DNA of 64,000 bases from contig JBLDXI010000019.1 in NCBI GenBank assembly GCA_047495785.1, positions 124,001 through 188,000 on the forward strand, given 5' to 3'. Each line of letters begins with the position of its first letter. Within the stretch, counting starts at the first letter, position 1. Source of the DNA: Lepidodermella squamata (lineage: Eukaryota; Animalia; Gastrotricha). Under the pieces are notes generated by a model. That model searched no databases and was not told the DNA's origin. It was given only the letters and a program-made list of their open reading frames with translations. This document shows positions 2,965 to 26,833 of this stretch, piece by piece. A program made the position numbers and the translations under genes.

Positions 2965-3279
2965 ATGGTTTCCGCTTTTTCCTCTTGAGTAGGTACCTTA
3001 AATTATGACAATTATCCTCGCTGTCTGCAATGGGCGCTCGCGTCGCAGATAAAAATCAGCACGAGCGGCTATCGCCATACGATAATTACACAGCGAGCTG
3101 AAGAAGAGAGAAAGCTCGCACTGTCGCTTAGTTGAAACTTCTAAACTTCAGACTGGTTAATTGTCATGCTGAATTATTTGGAAACTGACCTAATTTGTCG
3201 TGTTTACGAAAAGACAAGCAGAGTGGCGCAGTGGAAGCGCGCTGGGCCCATAACCCAGAGGTCTGTAGATCGAAACTAC

Positions 3280-4442
3280 CCGCTCCCCACCCGCTTTTGC
3301 TTGTGCTCCCCTTTTGTTCTTGGGACTAATACTGTATGGACTCGACACTGCTAGCATCTCTCCATTAAAATCCTGCTGGACGCAAAAAACCGTCCAACAA
3401 ATCTTGGTCGTAAAGTCGTTCAAAAATCGCGAGAAAAAAATCGTTTTAAACGAGCCTTTTTACGCATGCACCCATTAAATGGAGAGAAATCGGAGTCTCC
3501 TCCCGTTGGTACCGTATCACACCTTACCTTTACATTGGATTGCGTTGAAATTTACATTACTGAATTCTACATGAGAGGACCTTTGCAACGGTATGAACCA
3601 TGACCTGATGGGTGCTGAATCTACTTCGCTAAATTGATGTTTCTAACAGAATGCGTGAAACTTTCTAAAAATAGAACCGAATTATTTACGCTGATTTATT
3701 CATATAAAAAAATAAGAGAGAATATTCATGACTCATTCAATAATTTTTTGCTATTTTTTTATTCTCTCAAAAATGGCAATTTCTGTCTAAAATTCGAAAT
3801 AAAATTGTAGCACAGTCATAAAATTTTAAACTTGGCACTGTTGCAAAGATCGTGACCTGAGCTATCGATATTCGTAAAAACTAAGTCTTTATCTCTCGGC
3901 ATGGCATGTCCATACGGTGTTCTCTTCGAACCTTTCCTATTTTTGGCTTTGTAACGGGCGGATGCGTAAAAATGATGCTTTTAATGCGTAAAAAATCATT
4001 TTTTCATGCGATTTTCTCGCTTCGAAATTATTGATTTTTTTCCTGTTCAGCAGAAAAGTGGCTAGTGTCGAGTCCATACAGTATTGGTCCCAAGCTTTTG
4101 TTACATGTTGTTCCTGGCCCCTGACGCCCTGCCGTTCTGAGTTCCTGTTGGGCCAAGGGTGGCGGCGCGTGTAAACGGCGGCCCGTGTGCAGAAATTCCT
4201 GTCTTTCCAGTCTCCAGTATCCTGCCCAGCTGATCAACTCGCCGTCGCCGCTAGACTGTAACTTTTGTCTATGTGTCACTGTCTCGCTGTGTTCCACTAT
4301 GACTATCATCTGGCTGTCTTTTTCCCTACTCTTTCTTTTACCATTATATAGATAAAATTGTACGTGTGCTGTAATGTCCCGCCGGTTTAACCTACGGGTT
4401 GCGGCGCTGTGAATTTTTGCTTTTCGATCAATAAATCATTCC
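3280..4442 (+). mobile_element. Insertion in tRNA-iMet; probable 5'-truncated non-LTR retrotransposon 3' end (~380 bp after removing a nested MITE)
   Basis: Flanked by ACTAC duplication, no TIR or LTR termini, pyrimidine-rich, 3' hairpin at 4380-4406 and AATAAA at 4430-4435 just before the junction. Confidence 0.6.
3319..4094. mobile_element. MITE with 8-bp TSD nested in the tRNA insertion
   Basis: TIR CTTGGGAC(T/C)AATACTGTATGGACTCGACACT; TSD CTTTTGTT at 3311-3318 and 4095-4102. Confidence 0.9.
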
Positions 4443-4694
4443 ACTACGCTCTGCTAATGTCACTTTTTTGCAGTATCTATTTTGCCCTTGGTTTGACGAT
4501 TCTCTTACATCAGGAAGAGCCTATCGCCTTCTTCTTGACAGGAAAAACTGAAAGATCCTTATTTTGTAATATAATAGTACATAACTCAATTTTCAGCACA
4601 AAATAATTTATTGCAAAATACAACATGAAAAGACTGATAAGACTGCAGTTAGAGAGCTTCGATATCATCATGTATCATTCTGACCACTCGGCTG

Positions 4695-21467: not shown

Positions 21468-21539
21468 TCCCTGATGGTCTAGTGGTTAGGATTCCGCGTT
21501 CTCACCGCGGCGGCCCGGGTTCGATTCCCGGTCAGGGAA
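21468..21539 (+). tRNA. tRNA-Glu(CTC)
   Basis: 72-nt cloverleaf TCCCTGA...CCGCG TT CTC AC CGCGG...GGTTCGATTCC...TCAGGGA A; T7 terminator at 21541. Confidence 0.97.
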
Positions 21540-21610
21540 CTTTTTTTCATTTTCCGTTTTTTATTTTATTTTTTTTTAATTTCAAATTATTTATTTTGTG
21601 AGCTATTTAT

Positions 21611-21908
21611 GGCTGGAAGCAGTGGCGTGCTTCTGTGACTCAGCGACTTGAGGGCCGGGCTTGGCGAATGGGTGGCCGGTGGGAGCCCTGTCTGCGGATG
21701 TCACATGTCGATCGAGCGCCCCGTGTAAGTACGCCATCAACATGGTCGGTGCGGCGGAGGCCGTACTGCCCAGGTTGCGTAATGACACGTCAAAGGTCAG
21801 GTCCTGACGGAAGCAGCCTAACGATGTGCGTGGTGAGCGGTACCGGGACAGTGCTTGTGAATGTGCGCCGCAGTCAGCCCATCGGTTCACACAAACCCAA
21901 ATCTTTTT
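21611..21908 (+). ncRNA. 7SL (SRP) RNA, copy 1
   Basis: ~295 nt collinear with metazoan 7SL: Alu-domain 5' end with UGU motif, CATCAACATGGT, helix 6 with GGAG loop, CCAGGTTGCGTAA, helix 8 GGTCAGGTCC-TGAC-GGAAGCAGCC, TGTGAAT, terminal oligo-T. Confidence 0.92.
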
Positions 21909-21952
21909 CCGCTTTTTAAAATTTTTTAAAATTTAATTTCCCACTTTAGGCA

Positions 21953-24305
21953 ATGAAATTATCAGATTATTTAGTGCTCATATCGGCAGTAGTAGCTCGA
22001 AGTTACGCCGCGGCTAGTAACAACCAAAAACACCACAAAGGCCAATCAGGCCCTCGCCCACCTCCAGGTGGCCATCACCATGGCCACGTGAACATGGCCC
22101 ACGTTCTGGAGCACATCAACGACGACTACTCAAATCACCCATGTCGCCGCGATTGCGAGGAATACCCGGCGCCTATGGTTTGCGAGTACCGCATGCACGT
22201 TGCCTGGTACACAACAATGGGCCGAGCGTGTTACTTTTGCCCGTCGATCCTCTCCGATTGCATGAAACCAGGCTGTATACCAGGCTCTGGAACTCAACGC
22301 GGCGTTGTAGTCGCTAATCGCCAATTGCCCGGTCCTTCAATCGAAGTCTGCATCGGCGATCGGATTCGGGTTAACGTCGTTAATATGATGCAAAATGGCG
22401 AGACTCTGACCATTCACTGGCATGGAATACCCCAGCGTGGGACACCCTATATGGACGGAGCAGCCATGATCACCCAATGCCCGATAATGCCTGGCGGTAA
22501 TTTCACCTACGACTTTGAAGCCGCAATACCTGGGACCTATTTCTGGCATGGCCACACCGGCGCCCATCGAGCTGACGGCCTAGCGGGTCCCCTGATCATC
22601 CGCACCCCATCCGACCCTCATCGCGAACTTTACGACAATGACAATCTACCGGCGATGATGATGCAAGACTGGTTCCCGAATGAGACCGGCATAAATCGAT
22701 TTGTGACTTATAACTTCGGAAACGCCAATTCGTCCCCGACTCAGCTTTTATTCAACGGAATATGGACCGAGCCGAACGCCGGTCGAAAATCTGATAAATC
22801 CGATGAAGATAACCCGTTACCCCCGTTCCCTATCCCACTTCCACCCGTTGAAATACGCGTCGAAGCTGGGCAACGTTATCGTTTCCGCCTGATTAACAAC
22901 GCATTTTGGCTAACCCCAATTCGATTTACTATTGAAGGACATAATTTAGTGGTTATCGCGAGTGATGGCCAGCCAATTCTGCCTGTTGTGACTCGAAGCT
23001 TGACAATTTTGCCAGCCGAACGTTTCGACGTAATTCCTTACTTCACCGGCGATCAGATTTCAATGACTGGCTACTACACGATTAGCATGAAAGGGCTAGG
23101 CGATGGGGATGAGGGCGAGGCTTGTACCTATGCCAAGTTGATTTATCGCAAGGGCGAAATTCCGGCTCCGATGGATGCCATGCAGGCGACGAATGGACTT
23201 ACCAATCACGTGTTAGATGAGGTCAACTACTGGGATTGGACTAATTACAGGGCTAATGATGACGGCATGGTTGGGCGGAAAATTTCTCAGCTCAGGTCGC
23301 TCTATCAAGGCCAATATGTTACAGGAGTTCCAGACTTCAAACTGCTGGTCGAATTTGTAAGTTCTTGATTAATATTCAATAAATAGTAAATATTAATTTT
23401 GAGAATCTTAGATTTTAATGAATTTCTTAAATTTAAATATCAATTTTAAATCAAAATAAATATATTTTTTCAATTTCATTTTCAATTTTTAATTTGATTT
23501 TTTTCAGGATTTCGAAGAGGTTAGAGACCCTCGATTGGAGCCATTATATATCGCTCGAAAAGACTTCGAGCCGTCGAAATTTTTCCCGTCCACATTCATC
23601 ACACCTCGTCTCAATAAAATCACGAACCTAATGCCGCCTGTTCCTCTACTAACGCAAGAGAACGAAATTCCCGAGGACATGTTCTGCAATGCCCAAAACC
23701 GCAAATGCCCGCCTACCGAGTTCTGCGAGTGCATTCACGCCGTTGACATACCAGTTGGAGCATTGGTTGAGCTTGTGATGGTCGACAATGGGTTCTCTGA
23801 TGAAACAGTTGATTTTAACCACCCGATGCACATACATGGCTATCATTTCCGCGTCGTCGCTCAGGGCAAGCTCCACCTTAATCTGACGCGTCGTGAGGTC
23901 ATGGAACTGGACCTTTTCGGGCAGATTCCACGCAATCTTCATTACGCGCCGTTGAAAGACGTGATTGGAGTCCCGGCGGGTGGGTATACCATCGTGAGAT
24001 TTGTTGCTGATAACCCGGGCGCTTGGCTCTTCCACTGCCACATCGACTTCCACATGGAGTTTGGCATGGGCATGGTACTTCGCGTTGGCTACCAGCGTCA
24101 CTTGCCTCCGCCTCCACCTAATTTTCCGACTTGCTCTTATTCGGCTATGATGGCGGCTTTTATCGATAAATCAATCAATTATCAGCCACCTGGTTACTTG
24201 CCTCGAAAGCGAAATGCGGCCCATCTAAGGAATGACAAGGGTCAGAATAGAACAATTCTACCGTCTCCGTGGCCTGTTTCATCGTCTACGTCGCCTAGGT
24301 ACTGA
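21953..24305 (+). CDS. Secreted laccase-like multicopper oxidase 1 (intron 23357-23507)
   Basis: Signal peptide, His-rich and Cys-rich N-terminus, copper motifs HWHG, WHGH, HPMHIHG, HCHIDFHMEFGM; AATAAA near 24353. Confidence 0.95.
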
Positions 24306-24511
24306 ATGCGATGCTTTCGGGATTAAAATGTCGCACTTTTTCTTGATTTTATTAATAAAATTGAATAATATTTTAAAAGAAAGTGATCTTCTATGAAGCA
24401 AACTTAGGGATTAGGGATTAAACGGAAATTTAATCGGCTATTGCAGATCCTGAAACCTTCCTAATGTCATTCTTCGAATAAAAGGTAACATTTGGAGCCG
24501 AAAAAATATTG

Positions 24512-24810
24512 AAAAAAGATTTGGGTCCGTGTGGACCGATGGGCTGACTGCGGCGCACATTCACAAGCACTGTCCCGGTACCGCTCACCACGCACATCGT
24601 TAGGCTGCTTCCGTCAGGACCTGACCTTTGACGTGTCATTACGCAACCTGGGCAGTACGGCCTCCGCCGCACCGACCATGTTGATGGCGTACTTACACGG
24701 GGCGCTCGATCGACATGTGACATCCGCAGACAGGGCTCCCACCGGCTACTCATTCGCCAAGCCCGGCCCTCAAGTCGCTGAGTCACAGAAGCACGCCACT
24801 GCTTCCAGCC
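24512..24810 (-). ncRNA. 7SL (SRP) RNA, copy 2
   Basis: Reverse complement of copy 1 with about 5 substitutions; T6 terminator at 24517-24512. Confidence 0.92.
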
Positions 24811-24881
24811 ATAAAAAGCTTCTGTCAACTTGATCAAATCTGTCACTCTTGATTTATTGGAATGAGTATAAAAGCTACGAC

Positions 24882-24953
24882 AGGCCCAGGCGGGAATTGA
24901 ACCCGCGATCTTCTGTTTACGAGACAGACGCTCTACCACTAAGCTACTGAGCC
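24882..24953 (-). tRNA. tRNA-Thr(CGT)
   Basis: GGCTCAGTAGCTTAGTGGTAGAGCG TCTGT CT CGT AA ACAGA AGATC GCGGG TTCAATT CCCGC CTGGGCC T; 72-nt cloverleaf. Confidence 0.95.
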
Positions 24954-25141
24954 AGGCTGGAAAATTCGTAGATTCACAGAACTTTGCGGATCCACTAAAA
25001 CGTCTTATCAAGTAGGTATCATACTGCCCTGGTTTTTGGTAGTGTGATCAAAACTTGATTGATAGTTCGGATGCTGCCGAATGTAGCTTTTGTTGGGTAA
25101 GGTTGTTTCATGAGTTAAGGAGGCACGGTCAAATTCAGACA

Positions 25142-25213
25142 AGCAGAGTGGCGCAGTGGAAGCGCGCTGGGCCCATAACCCAGAGGTCTGTAGATCGAAA
25201 CTACGCTCTGCTA
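25142..25213 (+). tRNA. Initiator tRNA-Met(CAT)
   Basis: A1-U72 pair, GGG/CCC anticodon stem, ATCGAAA T-loop (eukaryotic initiator hallmarks); T5 terminator downstream. Confidence 0.97.
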
Positions 25214-25482
25214 AATGTCCATTTTTGACCCAGTCACGTTTTTTATCGCAAGTAATGGAATTTATTAAGGATGAGTGATCTATAAATAATTTTCTATTTT
25301 TCTCTCAACACGGAGCATAATAAAGCAATCGCTTCCCTCACATGTTGTTTCCAAGGATAGCTACCTCGATGGCGAGACTGATTGAAGCTTTGACTACATT
25401 GTCGTCTGTATCAGTCCTTAATGGTGTCAGTTAACAACCGGTCAACGGTCAAGCAATATTGACTTGATTAAGGAAAGGTTTT

Positions 25483-25902
25483 TTAGGCAAGGTACAAGCG
25501 TGTAAAATAAAGGGCTCCTAAAATGTACGTCGCCAAGCCGCCTCCAATCGTAGCAATACTCAAAACGATAGAGCAGCAATACCAGAATGGCTGTAGGGTT
25601 CGCTGCGTAGCGATTGAAAGCGCTGGCACCCAGAGCGGAAACAACGGGAAGAAGAGAGCTGCCGCAATCGCTGATAGCAGATAAGCAACTTTTCTCAAGA
25701 TCGGAGAACCAGTCGCGGTATCACGGCAAATTGAGATTGGCTTTGCTGCTGAAATGATCACTACCGACTGCTTAGAAGTTGACAAATATGGAAGTTGTGA
25801 GACAGGTGAGCAGCAAACAGATTGCCGGGTGAACGGGCCGGATGAACACGCATTGCCGAACCGAGAAATCTTATACACACAACTCGTCTCCGGCATTGAC
25901 AT
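25483..25902 (-). CDS. Dispanin/CD225-like small membrane protein
   Basis: 139 aa; LRKVAYLLSAIAAALFFPLFPLWVPALSIA...WYCCSIVLSIATIGGGL. Confidence 0.7.
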   Translation of the reverse strand: MSMPETSCVYKISRFGNACSSGPFTRQSVCCSPVSQLPYLSTSKQSVVIISAAKPISICRDTATGSPILRKVAYLLSAIAAALFFPLFPLWVPALSIATQRTLQPFWYCCSIVLSIATIGGGLATYILGALYFTRLYLA

Positions 25903-26761
25903 GCTTCGAGGTACCTTTTTATAAATAGGTCACGTTTCAAACGTTCATGAGCAATTTGAATTAATACCTTTGCATTCTGTCTTCCAACCATTGGACTATT
26001 GAGAATGAATTAAGTTGATGATAGAAATCACTAGAATGTGGAATACCATAGCATTTAAAAGTTTTAATACGGATCAAAATGACCACGATTAGTCAATAAT
26101 CAAGATAGTTTTGGCAAAATTTGGTGAATCGGGCAATTTGCACAGTTGGTTGGGGTAAATAAAATTTTCGAATAAAAATTGACTTATTTATTATAACTGT
26201 TAAAGTATCCGCATTAAAAAATGAACGGGTATATATGTTTTCCAAGGTTTTTGGGCGATGTTGTTTTTCATCCTTGACCATATTTAGATTATTATTTACA
26301 TTCAGCCCGCATAAATCGTGGTGTCGCGGGGTCGTGATTCTTCCCTGGGGACCCCGCACTCCACAGTGCACTTGACCACCAACCAATTTTTTTGTGGTAT
26401 TTTTAAATCCTATTTCTATTCTTACATTATTTACGAACCTATTTACTACAATTTGTAAAGGTCAAATTACGCATTAAATGCAGTCAAACTGGAGGGGGCG
26501 TGTTTAGCTTTTATTTTCAGGAGTAAGCCACCTCCGCAGGTTCCAGTGTGGCTACACCGGCTTGATTTAATACAATTATATACCGTTTATTCTCACTCCA
26601 ATGGTATGAAGGTTCAGTAAATGAAGCGCGATGAACTGAAGATCAAGAGGGAAAACTCGTAATATCGCATCTGTTGAAACTTCAATCCAAAACTCGGACA
26701 GGTTAATTGATGTCATCTCAATTGGTAATTTGACCTAATTTATCAAGATTACACAGAGACA

Positions 26762-26833
26762 AGCAGAGTGGCGCAGTGGAAGCGCGCTGGGCCCATAACC
26801 CAGAGGTCTGTAGATCGAAACTACGCTCTGCTA
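26762..26833 (+). tRNA. Initiator tRNA-Met(CAT)
   Basis: Identical to the copy at 25142; long T-run terminator downstream. Confidence 0.97.

Follow-up and report, generated by a model that had tools for sequence, protein, structure and literature searches.

Within the window, as we call the whole stretch of 64,000 nucleotides of Lepidodermella squamata DNA analysed here, an initiator-tRNA gene (tRNA-iMet, CAT) is broken in its T-arm by an insert that lies in the same orientation as the gene. The question raised by this locus is whether the inserted element seeks out initiator-tRNA genes or has struck one of them off target. The original prediction, made from the window alone, had read the insert as the truncated copy of a retrotransposon that may be specific for such genes, with a second transposon nested inside it. 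Its features, and those of the two intact genes that serve as references for the empty site, are listed here in window coordinates.

3217-3279, plus strand: tRNA-iMet (CAT) gene, nt 1-63, matching the intact genes at 25142 and 26762 throughout; the break is downstream of both internal promoter boxes
3275-3279, plus strand: 5' copy of the target-site duplication ACTAC (tRNA nt 59-63), single in intact genes
3280-3318, plus strand: first 39 nt of the LINE fragment (its 5'-truncated start), including CTTTTGTT at 3311-3318; collinear with the C24, C3, C27 and C90 copies after removal of the MITE
3319-4094, no strand assigned: nested MITE of 776 bp, its 31-nt inverted ends 97% complementary; represented elsewhere by at least 10 full-length copies
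4095-4102, plus strand: second copy of the MITE's 8-bp target-site duplication, CTTTTGTT, read from the sequence
4103-4442, plus strand: last 340 nt of the LINE fragment, up to the family's common 3' end ...AATAAATCATTCC, placed by identity to other copies
4380-4406, plus strand: 3' stem-loop, from an alignment of 13 copies
4430-4435, plus strand: AATAAA, 7 nt before the junction, in invariant alignment columns
4443-4447, plus strand: 3' copy of the target-site duplication ACTAC
4448-4456, plus strand: tRNA-iMet nt 64-72, GCTCTGCTA, with no mismatches against the intact copies
4464-4469: the gene's own T6 terminator, 3' of the second tRNA piece
25142-25213, plus strand: intact iMet gene, an empty-site reference (ARAGORN and Rfam)
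26762-26833, plus strand: intact iMet gene, flanked by sequence paralogous to that around the split copy; the best empty-site reference (alignment)

The broken gene and the anatomy of its insert

Direct comparison with the two intact iMet genes of the window defines the break to the base: the gene splits after nt 63 and resumes with its last 9 nt at 4448, and ACTAC, which occurs once in each intact gene, occurs twice in the split copy. Taken together, the two halves are identical to live iMet genes at 72 of 72 positions, which would imply either a fairly recent insertion or gene conversion, and the stretch 3217-3288 keeps an Rfam tRNA score of 34.7 bits. In alignment, the split copy and the intact gene at 26762 have paralogous 5' flanks; this paralogy and the T6 terminator of its own identify the locus as a real resident gene rather than a retro-copied fragment. 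As the break spares both promoter boxes, which precede it, the broken gene could still support initiation by Pol III, which would be expected to stop at a T4 run about 17 nt into the insert.

Nested within the insert is a hAT-like MITE, classed as such by its 8-bp duplication, that shows terminal inverted repeats, CTTTTGTT on both of its sides and many non-coding copies, at least 10 of them full-length in the genome at 86-88% identity. When the MITE is deleted together with one copy of its duplication, the outer element becomes collinear again with its other copies and measures 379 bp (3280-3318 plus 4103-4442) in the tRNA's orientation; neither inverted nor long terminal repeats are present in it, other than the ends of the nested MITE. 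The structural part of the original prediction is thereby borne out in full: the exact split of the tRNA with its duplicated ACTAC; a MITE with an 8-bp duplication at 3319-4094, confirmed by its 31-nt ends and by CTTTTGTT at 3311-3318 and 4095-4102; and around it an insert of about 380 bp lacking TIR or LTR ends, with a 3' hairpin and with AATAAA 7 nt from the junction. All coordinates given for the locus proved correct when re-read against the sequence.

At the 5' junction, the element sequence AACTGTAC, which in other copies stands just upstream of the truncation point, resembles the target AAACTAC. Microhomology of this kind is often seen where truncated LINE cDNAs are joined. LINE reverse transcriptases also make chimeras with small RNAs, and the junction could on these grounds be read as that of a chimeric retro-copy, formed by a template switch from LINE RNA to tRNA, or else of a chance rearrangement, with no insertion into a gene at all. 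Such a chimera, however, would be without the 3' nine bases and without genomic flanks. Here, by contrast, nothing but the duplicated 5 bp is left over when the two halves are joined into a single gene, an intact copy has a paralogous 5' flank, and 3' of the second half stands the terminator that belongs to the gene. We consider a chimeric origin scarcely conceivable, and take the locus as an insertion into a resident gene.

A LINE family with a common 3' end

An own-genome search with 4103-4442 as the query, covering 121 Mb in 151 contigs and yielding a copy census that is a lower bound, recovered fragments and four further long copies at 74-82% identity, namely those on C3 (82%), C24 (80%), C90 (75%) and C27 (74%), all of which have the same final base as the window copy. 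Inspection of the 3' junctions revealed one common 3' end in all copies, ...AATAAA(N)ATTCC; a single copy carries ATTCC twice, which indicates tail slippage. The 5' ends are ragged, with lengths of about 90, 123, 321, 379 (the window copy), about 620, 988 and about 2,600 bp when measured against the longest copy. The length of the duplication varies as well, from ACTAC in the window and ACTATA at the C3 copy, which has a target-site duplication of its own, to 4 to about 19 bp at the rDNA site described below. A common 3' end combined with ragged 5' ends and variable duplications is the signature of target-primed reverse transcription. With these properties, and with relatives that encode a reverse transcriptase (RT) and an apurinic-type (APE) endonuclease, the insert belongs to a non-LTR (LINE) family of low copy number and is 5'-truncated, as had been proposed. 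The hairpin of its subfamily occurs nine times in the genome; leaving out one tandem and one contig duplicate, these represent seven independent insertions.

Other identities for the insert were considered and rejected. A solo LTR would fit the 5-bp duplication, but TG...CA ends are missing and other copies reach different 5' points and extend into an ORF. A SINE is contradicted by the lack of a Pol III head and by the ORF1 carried in longer copies. The 3' exon or UTR of a host gene family, a reading suggested by the C24 copy, which sits behind a receptor kinase gene, is countered by homology that stops at the element ends and that runs into a gag-like ORF with at least 75 copies. The gene in question (C24:1210954-1216743), directly upstream of the LINE fragment, is of receptor type, with an ANF_receptor region and a tyrosine/serine-threonine kinase domain, and contains an antisense RT fragment between its exons. 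A further 5'-truncated family copy (C25:896527-899814, at about 1501-1788) is located inside the RT coding region of an unrelated LINE, its flanks translating to RT motifs such as ...IDLEKAYD....

When 13 copies, drawn from three or more lineages, are aligned over their final 95 nt, a stem-loop emerges, at 4380-4406 in the window, composed of a 5-bp outer stem and a 4-bp inner stem under a cap that reads UACG in the window copy and UACG or UGCG overall. Across the 13 copies 99.1% of cells are paired and five of the nine pairs show compensatory changes; the covariation score is reached by none of 500 shuffles, and slid controls collapse. The support for this stem-loop is comparative, the minimum-energy fold of the single sequence being different from it and not significant. 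AATAAA is invariant across all lineages, 7-10 nt before the 3' end, and a poly(A) tail is absent from every aligned copy. The stem-loop is probably what the reverse transcriptase recognises.

The copies on C27 and C90 possess an intact ORF1 of 607 and 600 aa, respectively, with three CCHC knuckles and with the 3' UTR directly after it, and those on C24 and C3 show the same direct ORF1-to-UTR junction as C27. This reading frame is a gag-like LINE ORF1: a Pfam search of the C27/C90-type protein returned no domain, a protein atlas offers CCHC or PRE_C2HC gag-like arthropod clusters as a lead only, and the genome contains at least 75 matches to it, many of them open over 500-890 aa. Full elements were found on C89, C122 and C51; they encode an ORF1 of 734-811 aa and, downstream of it, a 1,022-1,027-aa ORF2. 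A Pfam scan, run on the C89 ORF2 only, identified an N-terminal Exo_endo_phos (APE) domain and RVT_1 with no further Pfam domain; the ORF2 of C122 and C51 is 66% identical to that of C89, and C122 matches the solved R2 and L1 reverse transcriptases in the PDB. C89 represents lineage A, and C122 and C51 together represent lineage B, which has a different tail, ...CACACATT(CT)n.

Extension of the hits in the 5' direction thus arrives at an ORF2 with APE and RT domains in relatives of the window copy, with only terminal UTR blocks in common. By BLAST, the 3' UTR of C89 shares with the window element an internal block of about 55 nt and the last 60 nt or so, and it is only in these two blocks that the autonomous relatives match the window copy; C122 and C51 have the stem-loop and AATAAA of the window tail in common with it in the alignment. 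An RT-encoding element with the full 3' UTR of the window copy was not found in the own-genome search. The direct junction of ORF1 to the UTR in the C24, C3, C27 and C90 copies means that the window's subfamily is an ORF2-less derivative. This subfamily has moved several times, most likely in trans by means of the ORF2 protein of its autonomous relatives. Within the 3' UTR of lineage A, the C24, C3, C27 and C90 copies also contain an intron-like stretch of about 55-60 nt (CCAG/GTAACTG, with a slash for the boundary, then a pyrimidine tract and TTACAG/G); the window copy, considered here over 3280-4110, begins inside this stretch, and its acceptor-like AG is changed to AT.

Home sites in the rDNA spacer and the hit on a tRNA gene

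The long copies on C27, C89 and C90 are located in rDNA. An empty rDNA unit is about 8.46 kb long; 18S, 5.8S and 28S share one strand, and about 230 bp beyond the end of 28S a 5S gene follows on the opposite strand. The LINEs occupy the interval from 5S to 18S and are oriented as 5S. The C27 element has full ends and a spacer duplication of about 17-19 bp, and at this position, site 1, elements of other lineages are inserted too: their 5' and 3' flanks show the spacer interrupted at the identical point, and their duplications measure 4 to about 19 bp. The occupants of site 1 are well diverged, with 66% identity between the ORF2 of lineages A and B and 47-51% between their ORF1 and that of C27. 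The empty site, TGAATATTAAATTTTCTGAG/GTTAGTATC..., occurs 322 times in the genome and its 3' half 411 times, from which we estimate that site 1 is interrupted in about 22% of rDNA units. Of the 29 occurrences of the loop motif in the genome, 19 are on small rDNA contigs, where most copies belong to three further sublineages with the tail ...CCATTTCAAT; these sublineages have their home at site 2, which reads ...TTTTCGAAT/TCTAAG GTATGATCGCG and lies about 230 bp upstream of 5S. The two spacer sites, as read on C27:55000-74999, C27:7250-8750, C89:103500-113499, C122:32500-42499 and C51:49000-58999, are used by at least five lineages or sublineages, and flanks that are 95-100% identical around such diverged inserts signify repeated, independent use of the same site, that is, site specificity. 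The normal targets of the family are therefore two fixed rDNA-spacer sites upstream of the linked 5S gene. Specificity for a multicopy locus, as the original prediction had it, is thus real; the locus is this pair of spacer sites, not the tRNA genes.

The two spacer units have in common a TAAATATCTGCG block, an AG/GT after about 33 nt and a terminal hairpin, which provides a lead that they may be spliced-leader RNA genes. Rfam found no small-RNA family on the spacer except 5S, folding of the units is no better than that of shuffles, and a literature search for leader-like strings returned nothing relevant. On the minus strand of C27:7250-8750, a motif of about 27 nt, GTCGCCAATGACCAYGTGCATGTGGT, is present twice (at about 893-928 and about 360-398): one copy precedes the 5S gene by about 35-60 nt and the second comes directly after spacer unit 1. 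Both copies could represent one upstream promoter element, and the second may signal a further small gene. Elsewhere on this contig (C27:55000-74999), the neighbouring rDNA units 1 and 2 are 99.97% identical except for their LINE content, one holding a 2.6-kb ORF1-only element of which just the final 133 bp are present in the other. This short piece is preceded by 86 bp of GATAAACG-like filler and is missing the 5' target copy; it arose either by a truncated insertion that removed part of the target or by deletion from a longer copy.

The initiator-tRNA genes themselves number 68 exact copies in the genome, and a search by anticodon-arm pattern gives 71 loci, the three additional ones being the split copy of the window and two uninterrupted point variants. 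A sequence-specific retrotransposon of initiator-tRNA genes, caught in the window as a truncated copy at its home site, would explain why an RNA gene of very high copy number carries an insertion oriented like the gene itself, and it has precedents in NeSL-1_TV, LIN15_SM and LIN25_SM, non-LTR elements specific for tRNA genes (PMC4640811), and in Dewa, which targets the tRNA-Leu gene spacer (PMC3706591). As iMet genes make up about 4e-5 of the genome, one hit among seven copies also looks unlikely when taken alone, but this rarity argument is post hoc, since the locus was picked for being odd. Moreover, the window copy is the only interrupted locus and the other 70 of 71 are uninterrupted; the 3' flanks of the seven independent subfamily insertions are mutually unrelated, those of the six others containing no tRNA; and the sites that the family uses repeatedly are in the rDNA spacer. 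These copies at unrelated sites refute the proposed targeting of initiator-tRNA genes, which we now regard as extremely improbable.

A softer bias, by which the family or its autonomous partner prefers small-RNA genes or Pol III-type chromatin in general, can be weighed against the remaining ectopic copies. The window copy amounts to one of seven independent subfamily copies, and one of ten non-rDNA copies bearing the loop motif, in a tRNA gene; tRNA-Ser and tRNA-Gly genes are found about 400 bp away from the ectopic copy on C33, which brings to two of seven the independent ectopic copies in, or within about 400 bp of, tRNA genes, and the home sites themselves are 230-920 bp upstream of a 5S gene. 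Such proximity is cheap, however, in a genome where tRNA genes, as at 21468-26833 in the window, are very abundant and homogeneous, with about 14,660 rough first-look candidates in clusters everywhere and dozens of identical copies of other tRNAs, so that a hit and a near miss both cost little. Nor is there a tRNA within 1.5 kb of the other five ectopic loci or of eight further related loci. All 3' flanks open with A-N-T, the middle base of which differs between near-identical copies, so that the triplet reflects a nick-site preference and is not part of the element; no motif is common to the ectopic targets and the spacer site, and resemblance of the ectopic targets to the spacer motif TCTRAGGT is not above chance (P=0.42). 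We judge a general preference of this kind to be unlikely. It is very unlikely, too, that the homing machinery has a relaxed affinity for other small-RNA genes, with the tRNA hit and the C33 copy as early steps of a target switch; if true, such a relaxed affinity would amount to a switch from the spacer or spliced-leader site toward tRNA genes. With two fixed spacer sites as the normal targets, the tRNA hit is instead one of a handful of stray copies.

Known systems and the fate of the split gene

Site-specific non-LTR elements are concentrated in early-branching clades with a restriction-like endonuclease (RLE) and in the APE-bearing Tx1 and R1 clades (PMC4640811); R1 in 28S, Mutsu in 5S, Keno in U2 and Dewa in the tRNA-Leu spacer are APE LINEs at fixed sites (PMC4640811, PMC3706591). 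Like LINEs of the R1/Tx1 type, the family described here combines an APE endonuclease and RT with a gag-like ORF1 bearing three CCHC knuckles, places several lineages at one nucleotide position of a tandem multicopy locus, lacks a poly(A) tail, occupies about a fifth of the units and leaves 5'-truncated copies. Unlike them, it is at home not in a mature rRNA but in the intergenic spacer of the rDNA, on the upstream side of the linked 5S gene, its ORF2 is without a C-terminal Cys-His motif, and stray copies, that of the window among them, are present outside the target. By analogy, we take the family to work like R1-type elements, a likeness in mode of insertion. The portions considered here of a 2024 review on transposable elements in rDNA describe many such elements in the spacers, and name no multi-lineage, base-precise APE LINE of the spacer (PMC10946416). 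PDB, cluster-name and word-index protein searches yielded no clade label: the PDB gave R2 and L1 RT matches only, with the endonuclease unmatched, the word index gave one weak match, and the representative protein search gave a 41%-identical relative whose cluster provided no useful name.

If the spacer units are spliced-leader genes, insertion in the same orientation near the leader end would also recall NeSL-1, SLACS and CRE. Those elements use a restriction-like endonuclease, whereas this family has an APE domain, and the Pfam scan of the C89 ORF2 detected no restriction-like endonuclease downstream of the RT. Among DNA transposons, Dada-tL and Dada-tA are specific for tRNA genes (PMC3706591). 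With these, and with NeSL-1_TV, LIN15_SM and LIN25_SM, the window copy shares its position inside a multicopy tRNA gene and its short duplication, but tRNA-specific transposons have most of their copies at one position of one tRNA species, compared with one of 71 genes and one of seven copies here. A parallel for the subfamily itself is found in HAL1-like elements, the ORF1-only LINE derivatives of mammalian L1. Here too, an ORF2-less element keeps an open ORF1 and its 3' end and exists in several copies, presumably with an ORF2 protein supplied in trans; the lineage is an unrelated one, and the likely handle is the 3' stem-loop instead of a poly(A) tail.

We conclude, with a probability of roughly 85%, that a functional iMet gene was destroyed by the off-target insertion of a non-autonomous member of this rDNA-spacer LINE family, and that the insert was later hit by a MITE. 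We posit that autonomous relatives, which would recognise the 3' stem-loop, supplied the APE/RT protein that copied the RNA of the ORF2-less element in trans. The endonuclease would have nicked the bottom strand in the T-arm at GAA/ACTAC, and reverse transcription, beginning at the 3' end (...ATTCC), would then have halted or switched once 379 nt had been copied. Joining of the 5' end at the short microhomology between AACTGTAC of the element and AAACTAC of the target would have produced the 5-bp duplication, and the hAT-like MITE would have landed inside the LINE fragment at a later time. Loss of the gene would be buffered by the 68 identical intact iMet copies, and was presumably neutral.

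The split tRNA gene is thus best seen as an unremarkable loss for a genome that has tRNA genes by the thousand, among them 68 identical iMet copies. Its value is that of a clean and datable off-target insertion, for which the pre-insertion sequence is exactly known from paralogues, and such a stray hit shows what the endonuclease of the family accepts off target, namely only A-N-T at the nick. The site-specific family itself is the more interesting object, both for the study of how LINEs choose safe targets and for its ORF2-less derivative, which would be moved in trans via a conserved 3' stem-loop.
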